NCBI GenBank assembly: GCA_907165135.1
Contig: OU015569.1
Span: forward strand, 3,596,001 to 3,660,000
Source: Oikopleura dioica
Taxonomy: Eukaryota; Animalia; Chordata
Reading direction: 5' to 3'
Length of the DNA stretch: 64,000 nucleotides
Below, in pieces: positions 36,361-40,133 of this stretch. The stretch's first letter is position 1. Each line of letters opens with the position of its first letter. The notes below the pieces were generated by a model. It did not search any database. It was not told the DNA's origin and saw only the letters and a program-made list of their open reading frames with translations. Made by a program: the position numbers and the translations under genes.

Positions 36361-37569
36361 ATGAAGCGTTTGATAATAATCGTGAGCTGCCTTTTCGCTC
36401 TTGCCTCCAGCCTCGACAAAAAGAAGAAGAAGAAGCGCGATGTCTTCGACAGTTCTGAAATCGACGAAAACGCACTGGCGAGGAGCTACGAGGAAGACGA
36501 CGACATCGACGTTCGCGAGCTGCCATCCACCGATGAGCGTAAGAAATTTGAAGGAATTGATTGGGGTGAGTTTCTATTTTTGAAAGCGATTAAAATCTTA
36601 AAATTCTATAGAAAAAGTAAAGTCCAACGATCACATGACCATGCACAGTGAGAAAAAGAAAGACAAGAAGCTGACGATCTTTGTGGAGCTGAACCCGAAG
36701 CTCGAAAGGGCAGAAACTCGCCGAGTGGTGGAGGAGTGGCAGGGGAACATGATCAACTGCTGCAACATCGAGTTCGGCGCCGCCTTCATCCGCGCCACGA
36801 CCGTCATCGTCACGATGATGAACGGAGGCGGCAGCTTCGAGTTCGCCAAAATGATCCGCCAATCGAAAGACTGCTATAGCTACAAAGTCGAAAAGGTGAG
36901 ATGGTTCGGAGGTGTCCAATCATATTTTGAGATTTTGGATGGATTCGAATTAGTCATGGAATTTTTTTCCAAACACGCCCCTTCTTTTTCGAGTCGAACA
37001 CTTTCGTGAAGAAATCGACTTTTTCGAAATGCGATGTTTTTTTTTCGAAAATGCTTTTCGCCAGAGATTTATTTAGTAAACACGGGTCTAGGCTTCTATC
37101 AACAGACTCGATACTACAGTAATTTAGCGCTAGAGTGGAAAGCAGTGAGTCTACCTATCGGAGCTAGAATGGTAATTCTCGGTGCTCGAGCGCGCCGAAC
37201 AAATTAATATAGAGACATAATTTTTCTGATTCAACCGATTCCCTATACACTTCAAGGAACACTAAGAACTCATGCTTCACCAATAAGAATTAGTGTTCAC
37301 CTTTTTCATGCCTGGTCATTTTCGATTAGTCCAATAAATTACTGTTTTAGGACGAATTTCTTTGCCCTGCTCACCCTTTGTGGGACAAGAAGAATCCATC
37401 AATGTACAAGAAGAAGATAGAAAAGTACATTCCCCAACAAAAGCGGCGAGATAGAGACATCAAGATACAGAATGTTAACGTCTGGAAAAACAAGGGTCTC
37501 AAAGCAGATGGAACGCGCTACAAGTCCCTTAGCCCTTATGTTGGTCTCAAGGAAAACGAAGAACTGTAA
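36361..37569 (+). CDS. MESD: MESD (LRP chaperone) paralog B
   Basis: Signal peptide, ARSYEEDDDIDVRELP, KKLTIFVEL and EEWQGNMINCCN, ending in NEEL. Collinear with paralog A. Confidence 0.8.
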
Positions 37570-37663
37570 TCAAAGTGAACCGTCCCACTGAAAACGACCC
37601 GGAATTCAACCATTGTTGAAATGAAATTTCTTCATTTCAGATTTGCGCGTGAAAAATCCCACG

Positions 37664-38043
37664 ATGGCGGACGAAAATAAGGTCGAACACATCAACCTCA
37701 AGGTCGCCGGCCAGGATGGCTCTGTCGTCCAGATAGGGTTACTCGATCTCCTTGCCATGCGTTTAAGATTTATTTGCTCAAGTAACCCGCGTTTTACTTC
37801 AAAATCAAAAAGCACACCCCGCTCCGCAAGCTGATGCAGGCCTACTGCGACCGACAAGGTCTCCAGCTCAACCTTGTGCGATTCCGATTCGACGGAAACC
37901 CGGTCAAGGTAGCTCTCATTCTCCTTTTCTTTCTTTTAACATGGTAATTTTAGGAGACCGACACTCCCGAAAACCTCGAGATGGAGGACGAAGACACCAT
38001 CGACGTGTTCCAAAGCCAAACCGGCGGCTTTGTTGCCAACTGA
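37664..38043 (+). CDS. SUMO: Small ubiquitin-like modifier (SUMO2/3-like)
   Basis: [23 protein letters not shown]|[37 protein letters not shown]|[29 protein letters not shown], with the di-Gly maturation site. Confidence 0.97.
37733..37797 (+). other. Non-canonical intron (best reading AT-AC, 65 bp) in SUMO
   Basis: Removing it restores GSVVQFKIK. Every AG acceptor in the segment is followed by the in-frame TAA at 37783-85, and the next AG deletes the conserved FKIKK. Confidence 0.85.
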
Positions 38044-38353
38044 ACAGCGCTCTCCCTTACAGAAACTGCCTTCCTCTCTCTCAGTCCCCATTTTTGCACC
38101 GACCCTTCGCGTGCAACTTCGCACATCAACATGGAGAAGATTAATTTTTAGTTCAAATTGTCATTCAAAAAATTATCGCATTTTCTTTCTGAAATCTGAA
38201 TTTTTAATTTGCCGTTTTGTTCCCCCAGCAGCCCTACAGCTACTAGAGCAAGGGTTGTTTTATATCTCGCAATTCTTTGTTTCTCCTTCGACAAAATTAC
38301 TGGAATAAAATTACTCAAAAAATCGCAAATCTCATCGTTGTTTTCTTATAAGA

Positions 38354-40133
38354 ATGCCGCGTGGCAAGGAAGGCAAAGCAAATCGGGCTTTTATTAAGCC
38401 CGGCGAGGGCAAGAAATTCAGGCTCGTCAATCGCTCCTACAGAGATTTGGCTGGTTTCGCACCCGGTGCCAGTCAGCATGTCTTGGCGCCGATCGGTGAA
38501 GCCGCCGAGGACATGACCGTGGACGAAATGTAAGCGTTAAAACTTGTTCAATTCGTTGATTTTTGTTGCTAGGAAAGCGCTTGAGCGTTCTCATGGGGTC
38601 GATTTCGACGACAATTACAACTACATGCAGCATTTGCGAGAACGCTCTCGCGAAGCTGTCGTTTGGGAATCGGCAGACACTCAGTCTCAGTTCTCCCTGG
38701 CTTCTGGCATGTCAGGCATGAGCAGAGCATCCCGAAGAAGTCGATTCTCGACAATGTCGAAGCTTTCACGCGTTTCCAAGCCTTCGGAAGTCGGTGTTCT
38801 ATTTGAATCCAACATGGAATTGCCCGACAATCATTTTCAAGAACTTGCTGCAGAACAGTATGAATTTAATGTACGTGATTCATATTCAACTAAGCAAGCA
38901 AGTTTAAAAACCTTTTTAGTTGGATGTTGACCCCGAAGTTGCTGCACAGTTGGAGGAGCATGATCCAGAGGAGATTCTTCTTAATCCGGAAGATGAGGAC
39001 TGCGATATGTTCGACGAAATGATTGCCCAAGCGCGTGAACAGGGAAGCGACGATGAATTCGACGAGATGCATGGCACGGGCGAAACTATCGGAGCATCTG
39101 ATCCGGCGATCGTGTGGCAGCGATTTCTCGAGTCCACCGGAGCATATGCGGGCGACGATAACAGAACGATGCCAGAGGATCAAGAATACGGTGATTTCTC
39201 CGACAATGAAGCTCAGTTCTCTGACGACGTTAGCTTATTACTATACCGGACAGATAGTTATCATTCTTTCAGGATGACGACAAACAGACTCGTTTCACTG
39301 CGTATTCAATGACCTCCTCTATAATGCGCAGAAATAAGAATCTTCAAAACTTGGACGAACACTTTGAGGGCTACTTCGCTGAGTTTGACGATGAAGAGCT
39401 CGGAGATATGCCTCAAAAAGATCTCGACCAGAACGAAATCGACCACGATTCAAAGCTGCTTGAAAATGCGATTCAAGCCGATTACAAGGAATTCAAAGGC
39501 GAAGTTCGCTATGGCGAAGGGGTAGGAAAACTAGAAACCTGATTTCCTTTATTTGACCAATTTAGGTTCATAATATGATCGACCTGGCGAAACAGCTCAA
39601 CATGGCAGAAGATGTGCGTCGATACATGGCGAACCGCGGAGAAAGCGATTCTGAAGAAGAAATGCCAGAACTGGTAGAAGTCGAGGCGAAGCCAAAGTGG
39701 GACTGTGAATCGATCATATCTACGTATTCCAACCTGTACAACCGCCCGAAAGTCGTCAACGACGATGGATTCTCAGTAAAAAGCAAACTGAAGCCAAAAC
39801 GAGGCAGCAGAAAGGTGATGTTCGGATCCGCCTTGAAGGAACTAGAAGCCGACTATCAGAAGGAAAGGGTGGCCGAGAGAGCCCCAGCGCCAAAAGCGAG
39901 AAGTAAAAATGAATCAAAAGAAGAGAAGAAACTTAGGAAGCAAGCCGTCAAGGAGGCAAAACGTGAAAGAAGGTAAGTGTCTGCATAACACAATTAGCTA
40001 TTTCGCGTCACTCTGAGCTCCTACCTCAAACTATCATTTTAGGATAGAGAAGAAGGAAACCAAGATGGCATTTGCACACGAATTCAACCAAGCTGCAAAG
40101 AGGGACAAAGGAAACAGCGTGAAATTGCATTAA
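38354..40133 (+). CDS. LTV1: Ribosome (40S) biogenesis factor LTV1
   Basis: KKFRLVNRSYRD, GVDFDDNYNYMQHLRE, TRFTAYSMTSSIMRRN and KWDCESIISTYSNLYNRP. Confidence 0.93.

Follow-up and report, generated by a model that had tools for sequence, protein, structure and literature searches.

U2-type AT-AC introns are an established, rare class; in the survey of Sheth et al. 2006, human had 15 of them, mouse 6, Drosophila 3 and C. elegans none (PMC1557818). In the larvacean Oikopleura dioica, 11–12% of the introns are non-GT/AG (PMC8008620), mostly GA-AG (PMC7072748), and the U12-type (minor) spliceosome has been reported as lost in larvaceans, together with ZRSR2 (PMC13326754; bioRxiv 10.1101/2022.09.24.509304). 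Here, we describe an AT-AC intron from this animal, intron 1 of the gene that we call SUMO-a, one of two SUMO paralogues in the O. dioica species complex, and we regard its removal by the major (U2-type) spliceosome as most likely, with good confidence. The gene lies in the window, by which we mean the whole 64,000-nucleotide stretch of O. dioica DNA that was analysed, and its downstream neighbour is LTV1. We will set out the evidence that the intron is real, its conservation and history, and the complementarity of its two ends, and then weigh the explanations that compete for it before returning to the intron systems that it most resembles.

With intron 1 (ATAGGG...TTTTAC, 37733–37797) removed, the coding segments listed in Table 1 join into an 89-residue protein ending QTGGFVAN, which is a SUMO by its Rad60-SLD domain (Pfam E 4.3e-22 for the spliced orthologue L010) and by its C-terminal GG, QTGG being followed by FVAN. 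A first-pass annotation, made from the letters of this DNA alone, had proposed that the AT..AC register is obligatory, and it was right: when all frame-preserving removals around the segment are enumerated, SUMO-a is intact only if 37733–37797 is taken out, and the same junction is the one used in RNA. It had further argued that GT-AG solutions either run into an in-frame TAA or delete the FKIKK strand. The TAA, at 37783–85, does lie in the exon-2 frame, and the loss of FKIKK is common to all in-frame GT..AG removals, every one of which uses the AG at 37811–12. If intron 1 is retained, the frame stops at 37832–34, after 56 codons. The description of SUMO-a as an essential gene was too strong, since SUMO-b, a paralogue in the same genome, encodes a nearly identical SUMO.

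Table 1. Features of the SUMO-a locus, in window coordinates
Feature	Position	Strand	Basis and remarks
AG acceptor for spliced-leader trans-splicing (putative)	37639..37640	+	By homology, placed by alignment with the orthologue; 5' UTR from 37641
SUMO-a exon 1, coding part	37664..37732	+	Gene model, RNA depth; 23 residues
SUMO-a intron 1, 65 nt, AT..AC, phase 0	37733..37797	+	RNA joint, spliced L010, DNA contigs, orthologous introns in L030/L086/L087
Invariant 5' block ATAGGGTTACT (donor and left arm)	37733..37743	+	Identical in window, L030, L086 and L087
Left arm GGGTTACT	37736..37743	+	Imperfect extension to 37748
Right arm AGTAACCC	37781..37788	+	Imperfect extension from 37776; G37782 is T in L086/L087, uncompensated
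TAAC, putative branch site	37783..37786	+	Candidate; A37785 is 12 nt from the 3' end
Short U tract and terminal AC (TTTTAC)	37792..37797	+	TTTAC invariant in all lineages
SUMO-a exon 2 (ends GNPVK)	37798..37908	+	Gene model; Pfam Rad60-SLD E 1.6e-8 for exon 2 alone
SUMO-a intron 2, 45 nt, canonical GT..AG	37909..37953	+	Joint in X8 contig and in one X22 read
SUMO-a exon 3, coding part: GG maturation site and stop	37954..38043	+	Gene model, RNA

Sequencing data mapped on 37500–38200 (one raw RNA run, X22; one metatranscriptome, X8; two DNA runs, X3 and X4) confirm that 37733–37797 is a true AT-AC intron, taken out with precision. In the lineage of the window itself, the direct RNA support is a single X8 contig of 483 nt, near-identical to the window, which covers exons 2 and 3 with intron 2 out and has the ten final bases of exon 1, TGTCGTCCAG, as a 10-nt overhang abutting 37798. 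The read evidence comes from a sister lineage with a CDS 88–91% identical: X22 bears the same species label, is only 90–95% alike and has 13 reads on the region, four of which carry the joint 37732>37798, AT..AC, with at least 59 nt on the sides and zero letters shared at the joint. The unspliced X22 reads run on with exactly the intron letters of the JGI locus L030, which identifies L030 as the lineage of these reads, and a full-length spliced mRNA from the sister lineage (L010, from a JGI metatranscriptome) reads ...GTTGTTCAG/TTCAAAATC... across the junction and ...GTTGTTCAG/TTCAAAATCAAAAAG/CAT... when followed past it. Because no letters are shared at the X22 joint, the register is unambiguous (CAG/TTC) and the codon is Gln, not His, which rules out the alternative registers GA..TA and AG..TT, giving His, that the first-pass annotation had listed; the X8 contig, the four X22 reads and L010 all give AT..AC. 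A 60-nt junction probe, each 31-mer of which crosses the L010 junction, was found in 16 runs, all of them RNA and none DNA. On the DNA side, the X3 contig contains intron 1 with 0 differences over the 701 bases of 37500–38200, and the X4 contig contains it with 2 differences, both outside the intron. A base error at the intron borders is excluded: the same AT and AC are read in six DNA sources independent of one another, namely the X3 and X4 contigs and four independent assemblies of other lineages.

The X22 reads also show TCTAACAG joined to the orthologous 5' UTR (ATTTTG...), and the O. dioica spliced leader is known to end in ...GTCTAACAG / ...GATTGTCTAACAG (bioRxiv 10.1101/353979), from which it follows that the SUMO-a mRNA is trans-spliced and read from the + strand. 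Several features of the surroundings deserve a brief record. A perfect 9-bp hairpin with a 5-nt loop (TGAAATGAA / TTCATTTCA, window 37617–37639) ends at the putative acceptor AG and has no visible conservation in L030. The first part of the L010 transcript (L010:1–454, set against window 36848–37732) runs from the last exons of the upstream gene into SUMO-a, keeping the spacer between the genes and lacking all introns, an arrangement that suggests a polycistronic precursor (operon) in which splicing precedes trans-splicing; it might also be an assembly chimera. The upstream gene itself has a GT-AG intron of 454 nt (36897–37350), long against a genome median of about 50 nt, with small open reading frames inside it (e.g. 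37034–37207). In the 3' UTR of SUMO-a (window 38064–38159), several blocks of 12–18 nt are the same in L030 despite saturated intron divergence, and these blocks may be regulatory elements.

Orthologues of SUMO-a were recovered via open frames that read from the exon into the intron, and they place intron 1 at the same phase-0 site in three divergent O. dioica lineages. Its length is 64 nt in L030, which is syntenic with window 36529–39388, and in the Logan contig L089, which has the same intron, 65 nt in the ENA contig L086 and 71 nt in the TARA contigs L087 and L088; none of these lengths is divisible by three, and all of these introns read CAG/ATAGGGTTACT...TAACCCG..TTTAC/TTCAAAATC. Between the window and the orthologues, identity is 88–91% over the CDS and 67–73% at third codon positions, with 58–59 of 60 residues the same, and it falls to 52–53% in the interior of intron 1 and 50–53% in intron 2, where the GT and AG are the only conserved letters. 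The interior of intron 1 has thus diverged to alignment noise; its first 11 nt, the TAACCCG and the final TTTAC are invariant across lineages. SUMO intron 2 and three introns of LTV1, aligned likewise, keep only 2–3 nt per end, and the comparison indicates that the ends of intron 1 are constrained beyond ordinary splice signals; judged from these alignments, both ends are under unusually extended constraint. Two further observations concern individual copies. L086 and L087 (L086:395–459 against L087:134–204) are 99.4% identical in CDS and 100% in intron 2; within the interior of intron 1, an indel of 6 nt and 3 substitutions separate them, which makes this part look unusually variable. In the L030 lineage, a decayed second copy of SUMO-a (L084:650–1390) has an in-frame TAA, a 3-nt deletion in exon 2 and a duplication of some 40 nt around the intron-2 donor, the copies lying about 430 nt apart; the AT-AC intron is still there, with its ends intact.

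The paralogue SUMO-b has a different arrangement at almost the same place. Short contigs of it occur in run X3, which is the window's own DNA run, and in X8, and their tags are exact in the TARA contig L090. There, SUMO-b (L090:2083–2404, MADEEQKVEH...) is a nearly identical SUMO that has no intron at VVQ/FKIKK, has a 43-nt GT..AG intron right after FKIKK, 15 nt downstream, and has its intron 2 at the same place as that of SUMO-a. Four further SUMO-b variants (L001–4, L033, L091–94 and L095–97) have a 40–42-nt GT..AG intron after FKIKK, and those on contigs long enough (L001–4 and L095–97) adjoin CTP synthase. Three larvacean-like SUMO loci, L009, L029 and L035, likewise have a GT intron directly after FKIKK. 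Among the SUMO genes compared, the AT-AC intron is found at its site in the three O. dioica lineages of SUMO-a, and there is none there in SUMO-b, L009, L029 or L035. The position after FKIKK, being common to SUMO-b and the other larvacean-like genes, is the older of the two, and SUMO-a alone has the AT-AC intron; on this comparison of sequences, the GT-AG position 15 nt downstream looks ancestral. Intron 1 would then have arisen in the SUMO-a lineage, and the neighbouring ancestral intron would have been lost. In a tree of 219 coding nucleotides, SUMO-a and SUMO-b group together (support 84/95) and SUMO-b is recovered (96/91); the window's SUMO-a is placed nearer SUMO-b and a SUMO-a clade is not recovered, and monophyly of SUMO-a is, narrowly, not rejected on these 219 nt (AU p 0.064). 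The tree therefore leaves room for gene conversion or for a more involved history. The first-pass annotation had seen intron 1 as a GT..AG intron with both terminal Gs changed, and here it fared badly: all three intron-bearing lineages have AT..AC, no GT-AG precursor was seen among them, and the site is intronless in SUMO-b and the other larvacean-like SUMO genes. We also considered, and set aside, two other origins. Sliding of the intron from the ancestral position would be a 15-nt shift in which the first intron bases had to come from the FKIKK codons, and ATAGGGTTACTCGAT is unlike TTCAAAATCAAAAAG. A likeness to intron 1 of SUMO-b comes down to a 7-nt match, AGGGTTA, which is present in L090 only and absent from the other SUMO-b lineages, and we take it as chance.

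The two ends of intron 1 are complementary, as the first-pass annotation had noticed: GGGTTACTCGATC (37736–48) pairs with GCTCAAGTAACCC (37776–88) at 11 of 13 positions, and the pairing includes a perfect 8-bp core (37736–43 with 37781–88). The perfect stem (8 bp in the window, 9 bp in L030) starts 3 nt from the 5' end and stops 8–9 nt from the 3' end. Among random 65-mers of the window, 3.3% have a perfect inverted repeat of at least 8 bp and 0.2% have one this near both ends. The folding energy is unexceptional, at −12.5 kcal/mol and z −1.1, with 26 of 200 shuffles folding as well; for the other variants, z is −2.5 to −2.8 in L030, −0.5 in L086 and −0.1 in L087. The core pairs with a probability of 0.95–1.0 in three of the four variants, and in the remaining one, L086, the best fold is without the stem and the core has a pairing probability of 0.40 at 37 °C and of 0.06 at 15 °C. 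A 6-bp core, GGGTTA/TAACCC, is invariant in all lineages. In L086 and L087, a G>T change in the right arm breaks pair 7 with the left arm unchanged, which leaves a stem of 6 bp and turns the branch motif into TTAAC, an improvement; no compensatory change was found in the stem in any of the lineages compared. In a scan of the window for AT..AC segments of 35–120 nt in open frames, 1.1% had a terminal stem of at least 7 bp, against 0.9–1.3% for six control dinucleotide pairs, a comparison that is uninformative without RNA-defined introns.

A hairpin beside a non-canonical junction is a classic sign of reverse-transcriptase template switching, and the intron could on that account be suspected of being an artefact of such switching across the hairpin, or else of a base-call error or a pseudogene. 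We consider this practically negligible: the AT and AC agree in the six independent DNA sources, microhomology at the joint is zero, the frame, together with strong purifying selection, means that the intron must be removed precisely in vivo, and the junction occurs in many RNA runs from different studies. Three related candidates were also rejected. A processed copy is excluded by the RNA junction and the DNA intron data taken together; an antisense GT-AG artefact is opposed by the reverse complement, which reads GT..AT and is non-canonical too, and by the spliced leader, which the mRNA receives on the + strand; and a nested canonical intron (GT 37738 to AG 37782, 45 nt) has no AG in L086 and L087, and the 20 nt that it leaves behind would still break the frame. 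As to the machinery, the AT-AC termini and the branch-to-acceptor distance of 11–12 nt, short as is typical of U12-type introns, would suit a minor-spliceosome intron or the fossil of one, yet the signals of that class are not there. The donor ATAGGGTT, the same in all four variants, agrees with the U12 donor ATATCCTT in 5 of 8 letters, with GGG where the TCC core would be, none of the four variants has a /RTATCCTT donor, the branch box TCCTTAAC is absent from intron 1 (best match 4–5 of 8), and, where TCCTTRAY would be expected 10–15 nt from the 3' end, there is only TAAC (TTAAC in L086 and L087) at 11–12 nt. Larvaceans are reported to have lost the minor spliceosome along with ZRSR2 (PMC13326754), and the site is intronless in the paralogue and in other larvacean-like SUMO genes, which shows that it is not an old position; a U12-type identity is very improbable. 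That the intron lacks U12 signals and is best read as U2-type were both claims of the first-pass annotation, and both hold. U2-type splicing is the best reading because the minor spliceosome has been published as lost in larvaceans (PMC13326754) and no U12-type signals are present; removal by the U2-type spliceosome is most likely, with the absence of minor snRNAs taken from the literature, and a search for Rfam families gave no match in the 64-kb window. Compared with CAG/GTRAGT, which is not an O. dioica matrix, the donor CAG/ATAGGG matches at −3 to −1, +2, +3 and +5 and has G at +4 and +6; the neighbouring canonical donors (GTAGCT, GTAAGC, GTACGT and GTTAGC) are also loose. Close to the 3' end, at 11–12 nt, TAAC is the one yUnAy-like motif that all lineages have kept. 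Under U2-type removal, CAG/AUAGGG would serve as a U2-type donor that has A instead of G1, the branch site would be UAAC, and at the second catalytic step the pair of A (first) and C (last) would stand in for the usual G...G contact. In yeast, a first-base G-to-A and a last-base G-to-C change reportedly rescue each other, which is said to have been first shown there by Parker and Siliciano in 1993. Where the intron came from is a separate matter, and gain from a small inverted-repeat element had been put forward as possible in the first-pass annotation; this would be a transposon (a MITE or introner), as has been proposed for the non-canonical introns of Fritillaria borealis. The internal inverted repeat near both ends agrees with it, as do the 3' TAC, which fits the YAY triplet of F. 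borealis introns, and the documented occurrence of MITE-derived introns in larvaceans (PMC11282704). Such an origin is nevertheless unlikely, and the proposal is not supported: the 64-kb window contains no second copy of intron 1, only chance matches of 12 nt or less, the borders show no target-site duplication (CAG/ATA... against ...TAC/TTC), the arms of the repeat are set back from the intron ends by 3 and 9 nt where a MITE or introner would have terminal inverted repeats flanked by such a duplication, and the exon triplet ahead of the donor is CAG, not YAY.

More room is left for different readings of the helix, which is, as far as the compared sequences go, a real, partly conserved feature, and which could be a clamp, a brake, or the by-product of two constrained signals that chance to be complementary. 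The first-pass annotation had made it a clamp; the stem itself exists, and a need for it is no more than possible. On this account, splicing is structure-assisted: the pairing of +4..+11 with the stretch directly ahead of the U tract would hold the splice sites together, and AT-AC ends would be accepted by the U2 spliceosome only with its help. Perfect stems of 8 and 9 bp near both ends, rare among random 65-mers at this placement, fit it, and so do the invariance of GGGTTA/TAACCC amid a scrambled interior, the high pairing probability of the core in three of the four variants and the fold of L030; moreover, GGG at +4..+6 and CCC would not be expected to be frozen by donor or pyrimidine-tract function alone. 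Against it stand the complete lack of compensatory changes, the uncompensated loss of pair 7 in a third lineage, the stemless best fold of L086 and the ordinary fold energies of the window, L086 and L087. The right arm, besides, holds the only conserved branch candidate, and with TAAC inside it a stable stem would compete with U2 pairing, and a length of 65 nt is already close to what is usual in the species (median 48–51 nt, PMC8008620), for which bridging is unneeded. We consider the clamp possible, though rather unlikely. The same overlap of TAAC with the right arm can be turned round: a helix acting as a brake would sequester the branch site and slow removal, and the output of SUMO-a would be tuned via retention and the premature stop at 37832–34, which ends the unspliced frame after 56 codons. 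In poly(A) RNA of run X22, 5 reads contain intron-1 sequence against 4 with the spliced junction, and removal may indeed be slow or inefficient, a total of 13 reads being far too few to count. These reads come from one condition and could include DNA carry-over, and the assembled mRNA contigs (X8 and L010) are fully spliced; regulation of this kind seems quite unlikely. A mirtron was rejected as well, a stem of 6–9 bp being too short and the interior being unpaired and not conserved. What can be said at present is that the GGGUUA/UAACCC terminal helix may modulate splicing. A bolder version, in which GGGUUA (+4..+9) and UAACCC form a selected intramolecular helix that is part of how a U2-only chordate recognises or times AT-AC introns, and in which intron 1 is one of a genome-wide class of stem-closed non-canonical introns, is speculative and probably wrong in that full form.

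The locus matters, in our view, for several reasons. It provides a well-supported AT-AC intron, kept under purifying selection in three deeply diverged O. dioica lineages, in an animal reported to be without the minor spliceosome. SUMO-b, with nearly the same protein and a normal GT-AG intron 15 nt away, is a natural control, and the four neighbouring canonical introns (SUMO intron 2 and three of LTV1) give a measure of how far intron ends are usually conserved. It is thereby a compact test case for how a permissive U2 spliceosome handles A...C termini and for the help that it may draw from extended or self-pairing ends, and it records an intron loss and an intron gain within 15 nt after gene duplication. 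A new splicing mechanism is a hypothesis that present evidence does not establish.

Comparison with the known intron systems places intron 1 at different distances from each. With U12-type AT-AC introns it shares the AT..AC termini and a short branch-to-acceptor distance, and it differs from them in having neither the ATATCCTT donor nor the TCCTTAAC box and in belonging to a host lineage reportedly without the machinery. Like the nonconventional introns of euglenids and the end-pairing introns of yeast (PMC11282704), it has short complementary segments a few nucleotides inside both ends that could join them. The borders of euglenid introns, however, are not fixed, and these introns are released as circles by a mechanism that is unknown, whereas the borders, U tract and branch motif of intron 1 fit spliceosomal removal, and its stem is not maintained in every lineage. 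The non-canonical introns of larvaceans, which include the G[ACG]-AG introns of O. dioica (PMC8008620, PMC7072748) and the AG/AC and AG/AT introns of F. borealis (PMC13326754), are closer in that they belong to the same animal group with its permissive, U2-only splicing and, in the case of the 3' AC introns, share an AC after a U-rich tract and a terminal YAY triplet (TAC). The classes described in O. dioica keep the +1 G and the 3' AG, and intron 1 differs from them at both terminal bases; the F. borealis introns start with AG, have an exonic YAY ahead and carry MITE hallmarks (terminal repeats, target-site duplications and many copies) that were not found at intron 1. The closest likeness is to U2-type (type II) AT-AC introns such as those of human SCN4A and SCN5A (PMC1557818): the termini are AT..AC, the donor may otherwise be U2-like (CAG/AUAGGG against CAG/GURAGU), there is no U12 donor or branch box, the borders are conserved between divergent lineages, and the junction used in RNA starts the intron with AT and ends it with AC (37732>37798; L010). 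Intron 1 stands apart from that class in its host, which is reported to be without a minor spliceosome (C. elegans, with no U12-type introns in the survey, had no U2-type AT-AC introns either; PMC1557818), in its tiny size (64–71 nt) and lineage-specific position, and in ends that are mutually complementary and conserved far past the usual signals. On the best reading, it is a well-documented addition to the U2-type AT-AC class, which is already known and rare.
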